A stretch of DNA of 64,000 bases. It comes from Salpingoeca rosetta (lineage: Eukaryota > Protista > Choanoflagellata). Shown here piece by piece: positions 18,085 to 26,954 of the stretch. Location: the NCBI GenBank assembly GCA_033442325.1, contig JAWQFM010000013.1:1433035-1497034 (forward strand). The letters are read 5' to 3'. Each line of letters begins with the position of its first letter. Positions within the stretch are counted from its first letter, which is position 1. Under the pieces are notes generated by a model. It did not search any database and was not told the origin of the DNA. It was given only the letters and a program-made list of their open reading frames with translations. The position numbers and the translations under genes are program-made.

Positions 18085-19210
18085 CGTGGCTGGTGGGAGA
18101 GGGTGATGGTGGTGGCAAAGTTGGTTCTGGCTGTGGGAAAACAAGTGAGTGAGAGAGATTGTGGAGGAAGAAGACAAAACAAAAACAGGCAGGCCGTGTT
18201 TGGACTACACTTTATGTTGACGTTTTTAACAAGAGGCTAGACTGAATTCAGACTTACACACGTTTGGTCCGTTTTTCGTTTTGTTGGTTGGTGTTTCGTT
18301 TTGAGGGCACGAACGAAGGTTTTCGCACACAACCACCACCCCACGTGCCACTCTTCCTTCCTGTTCTGCCACTGCCCTGGAAGCCACAGCAGCCCAACCA
18401 AAGTCCTGCGGCGTTCCTTCTCCCTCATCATGGGCATGATGAAAGAGAGAACGCATGCGTGATGGCTGCAGCCACCAAGCAAGCCAAGCAGTGTGCCCCT
18501 TGCGTGAGCCTTGTCAGCCCTTGCGTTTCGTTGAGTTGGGCTGTCTGTTTCGCCACCCACACACTTCCAACTTCCAAGAACAACCACCTTTGCCAACCAA
18601 CCAAAGACTACTGCCAGGGTTTCATCAGACAAGCGTTTTCGCCTGCCAAAACTCGCACCAGCACAGCAGACAGACAGACAGACCATCCAGCAGCAGCAGC
18701 ATGAGCAAAGCGCCAGCGTGATGTCAATGCATTTATCACACCATACCACACACCACACCTCACCGCGCTCAATCTCGGCGTGCCAGGGCTTCCCAACACA
18801 CGCGCCCGCCGACAGTGGTTGATGTTTAGTTCTCCTGTGATCAGCCTGAACAACGAAGAGCAGCTGCCGTTCCACAACCAACACACACAACACAAGCGAC
18901 CGAGCAACCAACCCACCAACCCACCAAGCAAGCAGACAAGCAAACAACAGCGCACTCATTTCATCAACACGCTGACAGCTCCCTTGTACACCGAGGTGCT
19001 GGCCTTTCTCGGCGTGCTCTCTCAAACGCAGTCGCTCGCCCTTCGCTGCGCTCAACAGACCCGCTTCGACTCCATTGACAAAATCCCTTCCCCCCCCCCT
19101 CCCTTTCTGATTCACGTCATTCGATCGTGCTTCTCTCCCAGCTCTCCATCCGATCACCAAGCACAGCCAGCCGCGTTTCTTTCCCCCCCCCCCAGCTCTA
19201 TCGCACCGAA

Positions 19211-20526
19211 ATGCTTCGCCACGGCGGCATGAGCGAGATGGTGCAGCATCTTCCCCCGCCACCGAGCACGGAGCTCACCATGTTTGCAGAGGATTTGCCC
19301 CTGCAGCTCCACGCTCAGGTTGCTACAGCAGGCCAAGCCTTCAGCTTTGGCTTCGACGACGACGACGACGATGACCATGTTGATGATGACAGCAGCAGCA
19401 CAGACTCCTTTGACGTGCAGGATGAGATTAACCGGCAGCTACTCAAGCTGGAACAAATGAAGCGGTTTGCGATGCAGCCCCAACAACATGCCCTGAACCA
19501 TCATCATGATCAACGACAGCAGCTTAAACCACAACAGCTACAGCACCAACAATCACAACGGCAGCAGCAGCAACACGAACCAAACCATCAGCACCAGCAC
19601 CAGCACCAAGCGCCACCGCTGAGCGCGAATGCAAAGACTTGCCCAATTCTTGCTCGTGCTGACGAGGGTGCTGTATCTTGCTCATCAGGAACGTCATCGT
19701 CATCCTCCGCGCCGGCGACGGCAACGCCCCGGCTCCACCAGCAAGCGCACACTCAACCACCTCCCTCCTCCTCATCGCCGTTGAAGCCATTTCCCCAGAC
19801 CCACCGCCTCCAGCATCACGAGCAGCGCCAACAGTCGCCACGCCTGTCCCCGTTTTCGCGATTGCACGAACCAGATCCGCGGCAGCAGGATTCGGCCCCC
19901 CTGACAACAACCCCGCCCAACGCGCAAAGAAAACGGGGCACCACCGGCAGTGTGGAGGTTACCGCACGTGCAACCACGCACAACGGGTTCAGTCCACCGC
20001 CGACTACCTCACACATGCCAGCACAACACGCCCCGCTCCAGTTCCAGCCGTTTGCTGGAGCAACAAAGGGATCAGTGCTGCCTGCAAGCACGAGCAGCAG
20101 CGACCCCAGCGCGGCAGCCACAGCAGCACCTGCAACTGCGTGGCTGTCAACACGAGGTGGTGCTGAAAGCAACCAGCGACGCTCATCACTGCAGAAGGAG
20201 ATTGATCACTTTTTCTCCACACCAGACATCACAATGGAGCTCTCTGGTCTCGGGTCGCTGCCTCCGCTTGATAACTGCGGAAGCGTGTGGTGGTCGCCAG
20301 CACCGTCATCACCGCTACTGCCCCAGTCGTCGTCGCACGCGGCAGACGCAGGGACGGGGCTACCACAGCCCATGCTGTTGCAACAGCAACCACAGCAGCA
20401 ACAAGGCTTGCAACAACAACAACAACAACAACAACAACAACGACAGCAGCAACGACAGCAGCAACAAGACCTGCAGCATCAAGGCTTGCAACAACAACAA
20501 CGACAGCAGCAACAATGCCTCCTGCC

Positions 20527-20619
<93 letters not shown>

Positions 20620-21352
20620 GCAGCAGCAGCAGCACAGGTTGGTGTCAGAGCCAGTGCGTGCACGAATGTCGTCACCTCCAATTCCCGTCAACCACACTAG
20701 CACCATGCCAAAACCAGCAGCGGTGCCACCAGTAGCGACAACGCCAACAAACCTCGCGATGGATGCCGCTTTTGGCACTGCTGCCACTGCACTCAACCAA
20801 GACACGTTGAACGTGTCACCGTCTCCCCTCAGACCAATCGCGTCTCCTGTTCCAAGCCAGCAGCAGACACACCAACAGCGTGCCCACACACTGCACTTCC
20901 ACAACGGCAACATCAGCAACGACGTCAGCAGCAACAGCAATAACAGCAGCACTGCGAGTGCCGTTGCTTGCACTCTGCCGAAGCCACCACCTGCACGCGT
21001 GGTGCAGTGCCCCGTGTGCGGTGGCCGTGGCCGCAAGAGTCGTCACAAGGTGTGCGGCTGCTGCTACAGCGGCGTCTTCAACGACATCAACAAGTACCTT
21101 CGCCACAACGCGCACGTGGTTGCACAGGGTTCATTGACTGTGGATGAGCTGGCGGTTGGCCTCAAGGCCATGCCGCGTGGGTGCCGCAACGGCTACACAT
21201 GCACGCAGGCTGCATTCTCGGGACCCAAGGAAACACGATGCACACGCTGCCGCAGCGTATTTGCGTGCTCTGCTGTTCCAAAGTTTGCACACATGCTTCT
21301 GCGTCGCGCCATTCTCAACGCACGAAAGCAAGCTGCTCGCATGTCAACCTGA
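19211..21352 (+). CDS. Gene C: intronless Q/S/P-rich protein with C-terminal 8-Cys double zinc-finger (putative transcription factor)
   Basis: Single long ORF (first ATG 19211; start uncertain) with poly-Q tracts. C-terminal CPVC-x11-CGCC-x39-C-x5-C-x12-CTRCR, homologous to gene D. Confidence 0.85.
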
Positions 21353-21396
21353 ACTTTGCACTTTGGTGTGTGTGTGTATGTGTGTGTGTATGTGTG

Positions 21397-21427
<31 letters not shown>

Positions 21428-22361
21428 TGGGTGGTTGAGTTAGGTTTGGCTTGTGTCTGCTTCAGGATAGCATCGTTTCCTTTCTGCCTGTGCATTGCGC
21501 TACTTTGCGGTTTGTGCCTCCGCCGCGACCTTCTCCTCATTTCCCTCGTCCTCTTCCTCCTTCCCCCTCCTGTTCCGCACGTGTTTCTCTTTCTTCCTTT
21601 CCTCTTCTTCTTGACTGTGCATGGTCAGTGCTTTTGCTGTGCTGAAGCTGCATTGCGTGCTCTGATTGATTAAACCTTGTACAAAAACTACGACACACTG
21701 ACTGCTTGACCCGGAGCAATGCGACACAAACACACACAAACACAGACACAGACACACAGACACACACACACAGACACAAACACACAGACACAAACACACA
21801 GACACAGACACAGACACAGAGACACACACACGCACATCAATCATCAGTGCTTGGTGGTGGCATCAAGGACCGGCTATCCCTGGCATGCTCTCTTCCCACA
21901 CACAAGAGCAATTGTTCAGACAAGTGAATCTACTCTCCTTGGCTCCGTTCTTGTGCTTGCAAGCACCCGAGTACCCGTGTACCTGCAGTGCGCAGTAAAG
22001 ACACTGAAAGGCAATGCGTCGATGGCGTGGGGGGTTTGTTCTTCATTGTGGACCAGACTGTTGTTGCCTGAGGTGACACAACAATGCCGCCTCCATGCAC
22101 AGTGCGCATGCACAAGCCAATACGTGCATACGTGTTGAATACAGGGGCGGCGCAAGAATGGAACACACAGCCTACATGAAAACAAGTCCGCAAAGGCACA
22201 AGCTAACTTACAACAGGTCTAAGTTGTCATCACAATCGAGGAAACGGCTACAGCGCAAGTGCACACACGGGTATATAGTAGCAAAGTAGAAGGAAGGATA
22301 ACGAGGGGTGAGGAGAGTTGAGTATGGTCGTCGTCGTCGTCGTTATTGTTGTTGTTGTTGC

Positions 22362-22415
<54 letters not shown>

Positions 22416-22523
22416 GGTTGTTGTGGTTGCTGTTGTTGTTGCTGTTGTCGTCATCGAGACGCTGCGATGATGAGGCGCACGGGCCAATTGCGGTGCCCAT
22501 GCTGACGGAAAGGACGTGGCCGT

Positions 22524-23147
22524 TCAGTCTGACGTTGGAAGCACTTTCCGTTCGCGTTGTCGCTCAATCACTGTGCAGCAGCAAGCACACACACGCAGGA
22601 AGAAGAACGTGAGTTGAAGATCCATCACAGTTTTGGGGGCTGGCCTCGGCAGTGCAACGAAAGCGGGTCCACAACAAACAGATCTCACACACACACATAA
22701 TCACACATAATTATCATACACACACATACACACACACACACACGTTGCCGGACGAGTGCGGGGCATGTGCGGGTCAGGGCAATGGACCGACAGCGGGTGC
22801 ACTTGTTGTCCTCTGCGTGAGTTGTTGCGTTGCCATCCACCGAACAGTGACACACAGCAGAAGGGGCCTTTGTGAGCTAACAACGAGAAGCAGCAGCAGA
22901 GGCAGGCAATGTTTCCTGTGTCGAAGAGTCGAGGGCACAACCCAGCAACGTACATGTTTGCTTGTTTTGCTCACCATTGTCGTATTTGTATGCGTTGGGT
23001 GTACACCGGTAATTGTTGGTGCATCCGCGAGATACCGATTGTAAATCTGCACACGCACACATGTGGTTCATTGTGACATGGTCATGATGATACCCCACAT
23101 TAGCATCACAAGTCCGGAAGGACAAAGGGTAGCCACCAAGCGACTTT

Positions 23148-23185
<38 letters not shown>

Positions 23186-23195
23186 TGACATGTCT

Positions 23196-23229
<34 letters not shown>

Positions 23230-23269
23230 ACACGCACACGCACACACACGCACACATACTGACATGTCT

Positions 23270-23302
<33 letters not shown>

Positions 23303-23954
23303 TACTGACATGCCTGCCCACACACATGCCCATGCGGTCGCATGCATACCTCAGAGTGGGCATGTTTCGACACAACTCAGCACATCACAACAACACATCA
23401 CAACTCGCGTACGTACGTGATACGAAAGCTTGCAGGTCTGGGTCTGTGTCTGGTGTGTACTCGGGATGGTTTCGTAGCACTTTGCCAATGTCGTTGTAGA
23501 CACCCCTGAGATGACGATGCGCAGAGTTGCGACGTAGGTGTGAGTGAATGTGTGTGTGTGTGTGAATGTGTGTGTGTGAATGTGTGTGTGTGTGTGTAGC
23601 AAACACGGTAACGGTAAGGATTAAACATGAGTGAGCTGAGAGAGCGATGACGGCTGCTATAGTCGTGTCACAAACATGCATGTTGATGCAAACAACACTG
23701 CAAGCGTAACCCGTGGACAGCTCACAATCAATCAATCAATATCACTCGTGCTAAACTCACCCGTAGCAGAGACGACACACTCTGTGAAGGAGAAGGGTGG
23801 GCGTGGTGAAAAAGGAGAGGTTCGTTTTAACACGAGCGTGAGCTAACGTGAAGGATATCAGTGGCAGGCGTTGAAATCCGGCAAGATCGCATCCAGACCG
23901 AAACACGCATACACACACACACACATACACACACACGCACACGCACACACACAT

Positions 23955-24004
<50 letters not shown>

Positions 24005-25949
24005 GCGCGCGCACAGCTACATACCTGTTGTAGGAGCGCCTGCCGGGTCCTTGGCAGATGGGGCACTGCATGCGCTTGGACTGGTTCTTGTAGAACCAGC
24101 CTTCGCGAACTGTCCGTGCCCGCCCAACACCCGCGTGCTGCCGCCGTCGTTGCTGTGGCTGGTCACCATCAATATGCTCAACACCATCACCCTCACCAGT
24201 ACCCTCATCACCGTCTGTTGTGCCAGGCGTGTGGCGTGTGCTGCGTCTTCTAGGGCGCCTGCGCCTTCTTTGTTTTCTTTGCGTGTGGTTGTGGTGGTCT
24301 CCAGGACAATGCACGCCATCGTTGCACTCACCGCCATCCCCGACGCCGTCAATCCCATCAATGCCATCGATCCCATCAATGCCATCGATCCCATCAATGC
24401 CATCGATTCCATCAATGTGGTCGTCATAATCACCAATGCCATAATTGTCACCATCGCCACCACCACCACCACCACCAACATCACCACCGCCAACACCAAC
24501 ATCATCATCATTACCAACACGGCCTGCATTGCCGTCACCAACACCATCGTTCTGCTGCAGCATAAGCTCGCCATCCTCCAATGCATGCGCCAGACGCATG
24601 TTGTCGTCGCCGTCATCACCATCACCATCACCATCACCATCACCATCACCATCACCATCACCATCACCACCATCACCATCAAGCACACCCAGCCCTAGAG
24701 CACTGCCGATGCTGCCGTTGTTGTCAGTGTTGCCAGTCCTGGTGCCTTGGACATGATGGAATGCGTGTGCCAGGGCCTGCATCGTGTCAGTACGCCCTTC
24801 AGTCGGCGCTGACTGCGTGGGCGGTGTACTTGCTGCAACGCCAGCAAGCGTCGGTTCATGCAGCTGCTGGTGGAGCTGCCATGGGAAATGGAGCGGCAGG
24901 GGCAACGGAAGTTGTTGCTGGTGTTGCTGTGGCGGTGGAGCAATGTTGCCTTCGTCGAGATCAGCTTCAGCAAGGCTGCCGCGGGGCAACCCTTGTTCGT
25001 CAGCATCAGCTGCTGACAGGAATGCCGCTTTGGTGTCAGGCAGCCCGGCGCTTGTTGAGTGTATACGCCGCTTCCCCTGCTGCTTCCCCGCAAACCCGCT
25101 ACTGTTGGTGTTGTTGGTGTTGTTGGTGTTGCTGCTGCGGCCACTGGCGCTCGCAGTGCCTGCCGTATCCGTTGTTTGGTTCGATGGGCGGGGCTGCCTA
25201 CGCTGTGACCGTGTGGGCACAGCAGTAGCAGGCTGCGGCAGCGGTTCCATGGTGCTGGACAGATACGGCATGACGGGCGCGAGTGGTGTTGGTGCTGCAT
25301 TGGGGTGCGCCTGGGCTGAGGGTTGTGCAGGCACACCCACGTGCTGCGGCCACCCAACATGCTGTTGTTGCTGCTGTTCCAGCGTCTGTTGTGGGGAGAA
25401 AAACTGAAGAAGCGCAAGCAAGGCGTCGTTCGGCAGCTGGTCCTGACGATGGGCGTTGCCTGCAGGCACGGTGGATAGCGCAAGACCGCCCCCAACCAAC
25501 CCAGTTGCCGTTGACGGTGCAGGCGCTTGCTGTTGCTGCTGCTGCTGGTGCTGGTGCTGGTGCTGCCGTTGCTGGTACTGTTGTTGTGGTTGTTGTTGCG
25601 CTGTGGCAGGGGGGTTGACTAGTGAAGAGGGGGAGGATGATGACGGGTGCGGGGTGCGCACAGGCGCACTGCCATTGGTGCTCCACCGCACCAACGATGC
25701 AGCGGGTATCGGTGTCTGCTGCACCTGCGCATCAACCACAGCCGGAGCGGACGTGACAGCAACCGAGTTGGGCTGGTGCTGCTGGTGCTGGCGTTGTTGT
25801 TGGTGCTGCTTGTGCTGGTGCTGCTGGTGTTCTGGCAGGGATTGGATGAAGGAGACCAAGCTGGGCGTCGTCAGCGGCGGGTTTCCTTGTGCATCGGGCT
25901 CATGATGCACGTGTGGTGCAAGCAGTGCCTCCAACACCTGCTGCAGCTG

Positions 25950-25980
<31 letters not shown>

Positions 25981-25991
25981 TGTCGTCGTCG

Positions 25992-26026
<35 letters not shown>

Positions 26027-26954
26027 GCTGTTGTTGTTGTTGTTGTTGTTGTTGTTGAGTGATGTGGGTTGGCGCTGCTTGCACGCCGGCCACCACCTGT
26101 CCCTGGTGTGCAGGGGCGGTTGCGCTGCTGGCCTCCCCTTCGACAGGAGCTTGCTGGGTCTTGCTTGTGGTGTCGGCTGTGCGGTCGATGGTGGTATTGC
26201 CATTGACAACACTGCCAGCGGCACTCGTGGCGCTGCTGTGGTGGGCAGGTGCGGCATGGGCGTTGTGTTTGTTGACTGTGGCTGACGCAGGGGATGGTGT
26301 CACTGCCTGCTCTGGCGGGCGTCCGTGCTGCTGAGGATGCTGAGGCTGGGACGGCTGCTGCCATGCGAGAAATGGGGATGCATCGAACGATGGCATGCTG
26401 GCAACACCAACAGCACCGTGTGCCTGTGGGATCGGTTGCTGTGAGCTTGTGGCTCTGCCGGCTTGGCCAACTTGGGTGGAAGCCCTACTCGCAACTTTTG
26501 CGTTACCCTGCTGCTGCTGCTGCTGTTGCTGTTGGAGCGCGCCCTGCAAGATCGCCAGCTGTGACAGTTGCTGGCATGCAACCAGCGCAGCCTGCGGGCT
26601 GGGCCGATTGGCACTGGTCGGGGACATGAGCCATTGTGTGAGGGTGGCAAGTGCCTGCATGTGCTGGGCGTCCGCGCCATGCCCTGTCCGAATCGCTTGC
26701 GCCTGTTGTTGCGGGTGCTGTTGTGGGTGTTGTTGTGGGTGTTGTTGTGGGTGCTGTTGCTGAATGGGATGCAGCGCTTGCGGTTGCAGGGGATCAGAAG
26801 AATGTTGTTGTTGCTGCTGCTGCCGTTGTTGTCGTTGTGAGCGGAGGAGAGTACGAGCCGTCGTGCCCGGGTCGTCCACAGCTTCGGGGGGCAACCAGCC
26901 CGCTCGACGTCGCTGCGGCTGCCGCGGTGGCTGTGTTGGCGGCGGCTTGCCCAT
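22524..26954 (-). CDS. Gene D: Q-rich protein with the same C-terminal 8-Cys double zinc-finger (paralog of gene C)
   Basis: Exons 26954-24025, 23781-23761, 23505-23417, 23046-22975, 22812-22744, 22570-22524, all GT-AG and phase-consistent. They give ..[90 protein letters not shown]. Confidence 0.85.
24335..24690 (-). repeat. Coding acidic repeats (DGI)n and (GD)n in gene D
   Basis: 18-bp unit cccatcaatgccatcgat and (catcac)n on the + strand, translating as DGIDGI and GDGDGD. Confidence 0.85.

Follow-up and report, generated by a model that had tools for sequence, protein, structure and literature searches.

Two neighboring genes of the choanoflagellate Salpingoeca rosetta, here called genes C and D, encode an eight-cysteine (Cys) domain whose predicted structure most closely resembles the DNA-binding domain (DBD) of nuclear receptors (NR). 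Both genes lie in a 64,000-nucleotide (nt) stretch of contig JAWQFM010000013.1 (assembly GCA_033442325.1, positions 1,433,035 to 1,497,034 of the forward strand). We refer to this whole stretch as the window and count all positions from its first letter. The two genes probably represent a two-zinc, NR-DBD-like family whose members are DNA-binding transcription factors; we infer zinc binding, DNA binding and the nuclear role from the sequences and the predicted models. The new element would be a predicted receptor-DBD-like fold that belongs to a new sequence family, contains an inserted helical hairpin, lacks a ligand-binding domain (LBD) and occurs outside animals.

Nuclear receptors are textbook animal-specific regulators, and the origin of their two domains is an open question (PMC2950128, PMC8942334). 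They have been reported as absent from choanoflagellates (Bridgham et al. 2010, PMC2950128). Lopez-Escardo et al. 2019 (PMC6792448) report that the Pfam zf-C4 domain occurs on its own in certain choanoflagellate proteins; they conclude that the DBD is older than animals and the LBD is not, a view echoed in PMC8942334. An earlier annotation of the window, made from its letters alone (the sequence-only reading), had regarded the NR DBD as animal-specific. That premise had already been challenged by the lone choanoflagellate zf-C4.

The domain of gene C has the form C-x2-C-x11-C-x2-C-x39-C-x5-C-x12-C-x2-C-R and is read from a single open frame (translation of 20981-21349, plus strand; Cys1 at 21008). 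In gene D, on the minus strand, it is spliced over five exons and differs by one residue in the sixth spacing (C-x2-C-x11-C-x2-C-x39-C-x5-C-x13-C-x2-C-R). Common to both genes are the motifs CP[VI]C.G.GR, VC..CY.GV[FY]NDI.K.LR, RGC.N.Y.CT and CTRCRS. The spliced gene D domain matches gene C with an E-value of 8e-19 (40% identity over 90 residues, tblastn of the window), and judged by this alignment the similarity is far beyond chance. No third copy of the domain was found in the window by tblastn with the spliced gene D domain. The sequence-only reading had given the same Cys pattern, which translation and splicing reproduce exactly, and every shared motif that it listed is present in both genes. 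Its description of the rest of each protein as glutamine-rich (Q-rich) and acidic also agrees with what we find: low complexity, 16-17% Q, acidic D/G repeats and no Pfam domain. The genome, which it had taken for non-animal, is indeed that of a choanoflagellate and not of a metazoan; GT-AG introns, (CA)n-filled introns and long CAG/CAA runs mark the window as eukaryotic. The features of gene C are the following.

19127..21352, plus strand: gene C (PTSG_12352), a 741-codon open frame (from the list of open reading frames) with the eight-Cys domain at its end; plus-strand RNA reads at low depth
20996..21349, plus strand: eight-Cys domain of gene C, 118 residues modeled; known from translation, the 19-sequence alignment, an AlphaFold2 (AF2) model with a predicted local distance difference test score (pLDDT) of 96.4, and NR DBD fold matches
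21008-21064, plus strand: predicted zinc module 1 of gene C, residues Cys5-Cys23
21182-21250, plus strand: predicted zinc module 2 of gene C, residues Cys63-Cys85, followed by a C-terminal basic helix

The domain of gene C is unspliced. Its top phmmer match, protein P0001, is PTSG_12352 of S. rosetta, 99% identical to the domain. The public model of PTSG_12352 is only 169 residues long and begins at an internal Met, though the frame is open for 741 codons. This model also treats 84 nt (20924-21007, plus strand; GT..AG, in frame, 28 codons directly before Cys1) as an intron. RNA sequencing (RNA-seq) revealed no splice joint at 20924-21007, at a depth of only 3-13. Outside the domain, gene C contains a run of more than 50 glutamines (20480-20660, plus strand), an extreme low complexity typical of the non-domain parts of the family.

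The open frame of gene D (26954-24025, minus strand, 976 codons) ends at a GT donor. Reading through four GT..AG introns yields a protein of 1079 residues, the final 115 of which parallel the end of gene C. The eight Cys codons start at 24065, 24056, 23777, 23768, 23023, 23005, 22801 and 22792 (minus strand), distributed over the following segments.

24025..26954, minus strand: large 5' coding exon of gene D, Q-rich and D/G-rich low complexity, a basic stretch, Cys1 (24065) and Cys2 (24056); RNA depth 168-189
23761..23781, minus strand: 21-nt microexon of gene D, (R)VCRLCYG, with Cys3 and Cys4; GT..AG flanks and RNA reads
23417..23505, minus strand: exon of gene D with the remainder of helix 1 and the beginning of the insert between the modules; joints of 736 and 673 reads
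22975..23046, minus strand: exon of gene D with the end of the insert, Cys5 (23023) and Cys6 (23005); joints of 673 and 432 reads
22685..22812, minus strand: last coding segment of gene D with Cys7 (22801), Cys8 (22792), CTRCRS, a short helix, a (VC)n tail and TGA at 22687-22685
22031..22684, minus strand: 3' untranslated region (UTR) of gene D, unspliced; stranded depth 160-420 to about 22010, with a pile-up of read ends at 22031

Three stranded S. rosetta RNA-seq runs were mapped on positions 20900-24200 of the window; microsatellites were skipped as repeats, and depth there is uninformative. Gene D is well expressed (depth 60-230 on the domain exons, up to about 420 on the 3' UTR), while gene C is transcribed from the plus strand at about one-tenth of that depth. 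Every splice site of gene D is confirmed by RNA-seq, including those of the 21-base microexon. The joints 22812 to 22975, 23046 to 23417 and 23505 to 23761 are crossed by 432, 673 and 736 reads, respectively, and the join of the microexon from 23781 to 24025 is represented by 133 reads with loose ends that spell the end of the upstream exon. The microexon covers exactly the Cys3-x2-Cys4 knuckle and is used constitutively in the RNA-seq data. Downstream of 22812 no splice joint of gene D was seen in these reads, and the transcripts end near 22031. Therefore, gene D ends in the (VC)n tail with the TGA at 22687-22685.

Genes C and D are convergent, tail to tail, with about 350 bases between their 3' ends. 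A local duplication was considered as their origin, and the domain tree gave it no support. The tree lacks resolution and does not support genes C and D as sisters; they are therefore regarded as old paralogues that happen to adjoin. Long (CA)n/(GT)n microsatellites (21360-21840, 22318-22457, 23120-23340 and 23900-24010) occupy the intergenic region and the introns of gene D. The frame of gene D itself enters a GT/CA microsatellite (22685-22760, minus strand), which produces the (VC)n-rich tail before the TGA. A change in repeat length would alter or shift this C-terminus; the same region in gene C and most relatives is a long basic C-terminal helix. Further upstream, gene D is also of extreme low complexity, with DGI and GD repeats and a number of poly-Q tracts (24300-24700, minus strand).

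An exhaustive phmmer search with the gene C domain against 1.84 billion representative proteins identified 26 relatives, 13 of them at E<=1e-10. The named matches from S. rosetta are PTSG_12352, PTSG_02264, PTSG_00329, PTSG_07689 and PTSG_05628; with gene D counted, this organism has at least six family members. Other named matches belong to Salpingoeca infusionum (three genes), S. kvevrii (three), Microstomoeca roanoka, Choanoeca perplexa, Hartaetosiga balthica and H. gracilis (two). All named members are thus from craspedid choanoflagellates, the remaining matches being environmental sequences or sequences derived from the Sequence Read Archive (SRA). For the complete domain of gene D the exhaustive phmmer search found no matching public protein. 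The public model of gene D therefore probably misses the microexon, and gene finders are likely to miss an exon of 21 nt. When the gene C domain region served as query in a word-indexed protein search, no matches were obtained; the divergent protein P0020 recovered only itself and P0021. These two proteins form the most divergent branch of the family (P0020 is 21-27% identical to other members). They come from SRA and metagenome contigs (L001 2970-4319 and L003 115-1452), where they are single unspliced open reading frames with the domain near the N-terminus. The taxon to which this branch belongs would fix how old the family is.

The eight Cys are all invariant or nearly so among the 19 aligned members and gene D, and the spacing across the family is x2, x10-12, x2, x34-45, x4-5, x11-14, x2. 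All the domains are basic (net charge +4 to +17, isoelectric point 8.8-10.2), with conserved basic residues in columns 13, 33, 36, 57, 61, 81, 84 and 86. Most members carry the domain at their C-terminus, and five have it at the N-terminus or in a central position; a cluster of lysines and arginines is present within 40 residues upstream of it in 11 of the 19. All-against-all BLAST of the N-terminal parts revealed no second conserved region outside the domain, except in the near-identical pair P0020/P0021. The family carries no Pfam, NCBI or literature name, and our literature search found no paper naming any of the five S. rosetta PTSG genes listed above. Pfam likewise detected no family in the domain, in the full proteins of genes C and D (the low-complexity part of the full-length gene D protein included) or in 10 relatives; among the models not found in these sequences is the LBD (PF00104).

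Next, we consider the predicted structure. AF2 was given the 19-sequence alignment (A1); alignments of the family are shallow (19-22 sequences). The gene C domain was modeled with a mean pLDDT of 96.4 and a predicted template modeling score (pTM) of 0.88, all five models reaching at least 93.9. For P0020, from the most divergent branch, the values were 92.5 and 0.84, and the ten models over both runs span pLDDT 89.6-96.4. The gene C model opens with a short beta bridge around Cys1/Cys2 and a helix of 17 residues that begins immediately behind Cys3. Two short helices follow in the linker, another short one lies between Cys6 and Cys7, a further helix begins immediately behind Cys7, and a long helix forms the C-terminus.

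In a Foldseek search of 350,542 PDB chains with the gene C model, NR DBDs took all of the 50 best places (E-values 0.4-3, probability up to 0.98), with template modeling (TM) scores normalized by target of 0.65-0.69 among the best rows. With the P0020 model they took 49 of the 50 best places (probability 0.97-0.99 for the best). VIA-align, which is independent of Foldseek, placed NR DBDs in the first eight positions among 48,161 representative chains (Z 6.2-6.6, 69-88 residues aligned, root-mean-square deviation 2.1-4.3, 17-20% identity), covering nearly the whole DBD. A second look with this tool gave 101 chains at Z>=5, and the best 50 of the 101 were all NR DBDs (top Z 7.5, 78/80 residues). 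The DBDs of TR-beta and VDR, their C-terminal extension helix included, align in VIA-align to model residues 2/3-118. In the ESM Atlas the two nearest clusters are zf-C4 (TM 0.52-0.53), followed by ComF-type double zinc ribbons (0.43). The same ranking emerged from two query proteins and from three search methods; as far as predicted models can tell, it is highly specific to NR DBDs. The hallmark arrangement of the NR DBD fold, in which each zinc module is followed by a helix and the helices pack across each other, is present in the predicted structures, though the scores are moderate.

LIM, GATA, RING, PHD, FYVE and MYND domains are absent from the top 50 matches listed for each of four PDB fold searches. 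Like the family, they contain small Cys-rich zinc modules, and LIM also has two consecutive zinc sites. However, indels in our family are concentrated between the two halves of the domain, which speaks against the interleaved ligation of cross-brace domains (RING, PHD, FYVE and MYND). The spacing is near-fixed within the halves and variable (34-45) in the linker, which fits two autonomous zinc sites ligated in sequence and not a cross-brace. LIM, GATA, FYVE and cross-brace ligation, which the sequence-only reading had named as outcomes that would contradict it, were accordingly ruled out by the fold-search rankings together with this indel pattern. The structure prediction and fold search that it had suggested rank NR DBDs nearest, among solved folds, to the models of two divergent family members.

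A closer comparison with the NR DBD (zf-C4, PF00105; for example, the RXR, ERR, TR4, GR and TR-beta DBD structures 4cn2, 8ifo, 7xv9, 3g6t and 3m9e) reveals both similarities and differences. Shared features are the eight Cys in two consecutive four-Cys (C4) groups (sequential ligation being deduced from indels and alignment), the C-x2-C pairs, the C-x5-C in the second module, the C-x2-C-R at its end and the basic character of the domain. In the models, moreover, helices are predicted to start between Cys3 and Cys4 and between Cys7 and Cys8, and the C-terminal helix would align with the TR/VDR extension. On the other hand, the canonical C-x2-C-x13-C-x2-C-x15-17-C-x5-C-x9-C-x2-C is not reproduced: only the x2 pairs and the x5 agree. 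Where receptors have x13, the family has x10-12; in place of x15-17 it has x34-45, which holds an extra helical hairpin, and in place of x9 it has x11-14. The receptor motif CEGCK.FF[KR]R is replaced by C-x-x-C-Y-S-G-[LVI]-[YFW]-N-D-[IV]-x-K. In contrast to nuclear receptors, family members have no LBD, and their domain usually sits at the C-terminal end of a long protein of low complexity. All named members are from choanoflagellates, and no profile match to the NR DBD is significant. The sequence-only reading had anticipated the missing FFRR, the longer linker and the missing LBD, and the family that it called undescribed is both real and nameless in Pfam, NCBI and the literature.

On these grounds we propose how the proteins might work. 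The domain of about 105 residues, the only conserved module of the family, would bind two zinc ions in sequence, the first through Cys1-4 and the second through Cys5-8. A helix would begin between the last two Cys of each zinc module, and the two helices would pack across each other as in the NR DBD, with a helical hairpin of 34-45 residues inserted between the modules. The long basic C-terminal helix may be the counterpart of the TR/VDR C-terminal extension helix. The conserved hydrophobic residues at positions 24, 27/28 and 31 are spaced with the period of a helix, and the polar face of the same helix 1 (S25, N29, position 32, K33 and R/K36) is a candidate for reading the major groove, while the conserved R13, R61, K/R81, R84 and R86 would grip the phosphate backbone. 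Variable positions 21, 22 and 32 (G, C and N in gene C; R, L and G in gene D) could set different targets between paralogues, and the Q-rich/acidic remainder would be an activation or scaffold region. Considering the basic domains, the conserved basic columns, the upstream K/R clusters and the Q-rich/acidic host proteins, the most economical reading is that the family members are DNA-binding transcription factors, and sequence-specific DNA binding in a transcription factor is the most likely role. NR DBDs bind hexameric DNA half-sites through helix 1; on such binding by the family, the basic domain and the conserved Arg/Lys columns bear indirectly.

A number of observations weigh against this reading, and we discuss them together with the alternatives that they bear on. 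As to the fold, the Foldseek E-values (0.1-3 over both models) are non-significant, and the VIA-align Z-scores stay below 8, in the range that the notes of the tool rate as common. Helical domains of the MCM N-terminal and FF types reach Z 5.8-6.0 (residues 18-118, 5-8% identity), within one unit of the receptors. AF2 has been exposed to many receptor DBDs, and its network may favor that fold for a C4+C4 pattern. The receptor-like fold might then be a modeling artefact and the real domain something else, for example, two zinc ribbons such as those of the ComF N-terminus or eS31. ComF proteins are bacterial and contain a phosphoribosyltransferase domain. The corresponding Pfam model, DZR_2 (PF18912), resembles the first module of the family (C-x2-C-x(~11)-C-x2-C) and matches it weakly in 9 of the 19 members (best E 0.0033). 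A comparison of the family profile with all PDB sequences returned only the eS31 zinc ribbon (E 0.05, second module) and no receptor; in addition, ComF-type models are the next Atlas neighbors after zf-C4, and the alignment is shallow. Nevertheless, we consider such an artefact very unlikely. All five models in both AF2 runs are confident, the most strongly conserved places, between Cys3/Cys4 and Cys7/Cys8, are exactly those at which the predicted helices begin, and the hydrophobic periodicity suits a helix better than a ribbon strand. The ribbon matches are sub-threshold and cover one half of the domain each: in ten rescanned members DZR_2 scores 12-16 bits against a cut-off of 27 and spans residues 5-28 only, and its fold match (TM 0.43) is weaker than that of zf-C4. 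Other hits among the 19 members at E<=10 are equally sub-threshold zinc-knuckle patterns (RecR_ZnF and DnaJ CXXCXGXG) and, in a single member, the RING model PF13920 (E 0.64).

The profile comparisons count against the reading as well. None of the 19 members matches zf-C4 (PF00105) even at E<=10. In this they differ from the stand-alone choanoflagellate zf-C4 proteins reported in PMC6792448, which were found by Pfam; the resemblance lies in a receptor-type DBD (only predicted here) without an LBD in the sister group of animals. Profile searches with hmmsearch between family and receptor gave at most 4 bits in both directions. In hhalign comparisons with a 30-sequence RXR-like alignment the eight Cys fall in register, but with P-values of 0.04-0.16 and a probability of about 1%; against RXR alone the second module is in the right register (P 0.055). 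The receptor profile, gathered with an RXR-alpha DBD query 100% identical to 1ynw_B, is narrow (30 RXR-like DBD fragments, effective number of sequences 2.4), which makes the negative result a weak one. Anchored on the Cys, the similarity at 55 non-Cys columns beats column permutation (z 3.0, p 0.003), while the absolute score is negative. This signal stems from C-x-[VI]-C-G and [KR]-C-x-x-C-R, and such residues flank zinc knuckles in many families. At the level of sequence the link to zf-C4 is thus non-significant, and shared ancestry is unproven.

These results bear directly on whether the domain is a true distant homologue of the animal NR DBD. Choanoflagellates and animals would then have inherited a stand-alone two-zinc DNA-binding module from their common ancestor; on the animal stem the LBD would have been fused to it, and in choanoflagellates it would have diverged and acquired the hairpin. 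Such an origin would come on top of the proposed transcription factor role and leaves the mechanism unchanged. The predicted fold speaks for it, since its matches are specific to NR DBDs and extend over the whole receptor domain, C-terminal extension helix included, with Foldseek homology probabilities of 0.97-0.99. So do the order of the eight aligned Cys with the in-register similarity between them, the presence of the family in the sister group of animals and the lone zf-C4 reported in some choanoflagellates (PMC6792448). However, profile-profile and profile-sequence comparisons are non-significant (with the narrow receptor profile noted above), and the permutation null is lenient, since many zinc fingers have Gly and basic residues beside their zinc knuckles. 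Of the four inter-Cys spacings other than x2, moreover, three differ from receptors (x5 is retained), and the FF[KR]R core motif is absent. We regard shared ancestry as quite possible, if somewhat short of probable. The sequence-only reading had left the choice between a distant NR DBD relative and convergence. A predicted receptor-like fold can now be added to it, and the sequence profiles show no significant link that would decide between the two.

Two features of helix 1 also oppose a DNA-reading role: it carries an invariant Asp30, and the base-contacting residues of receptors (the CEGCK.FFKR motif) are not conserved in the family. They would suit a convergent C4+C4 zinc scaffold that binds protein or RNA, as LIM and MYND do, rather than reads DNA; the aromatic residues at positions 24 and 28 of this helix point the same way. 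Language-model features in the ESM Atlas lean weakly toward zf-MYND (0.88, below the 0.9 level that the tool treats as meaningful), alongside bacterial hypothetical proteins, and we judged them uninformative. However, the 50 best matches of each fold search contain no LIM, MYND, RING, PHD or FYVE structure. The domains of the family are, in addition, basic throughout and share conserved Arg/Lys columns, and the host proteins look like transcription factors (Q-rich/acidic low complexity with upstream basic clusters). A non-DNA-binding scaffold therefore appears unlikely to us, and we retain a DNA-binding transcription factor family as the preferred interpretation.

If the family shares ancestry with the receptors, it may, as a tentative and still doubtful proposal, be the choanoflagellate sister lineage of the animal NR DBD. 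The two-zinc DBD would then have originated before animals as a DNA-binding module on its own and multiplied separately in choanoflagellates (to at least six genes in S. rosetta), and only its fusion with an LBD on the animal stem would have turned it into a hormone receptor. Such ancestry would support separate origins of DBD and LBD and supply a concrete pre-animal representative. If the similarity is convergent, the family would still be an unrecognized candidate transcription factor family in the main choanoflagellate model organism. It would have escaped transcription factor censuses by domain, since no Pfam model picks it up and several of the gene models are truncated or mis-spliced. 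In S. rosetta the question is testable: several stranded RNA-seq data sets exist, and genome editing is available in this organism.

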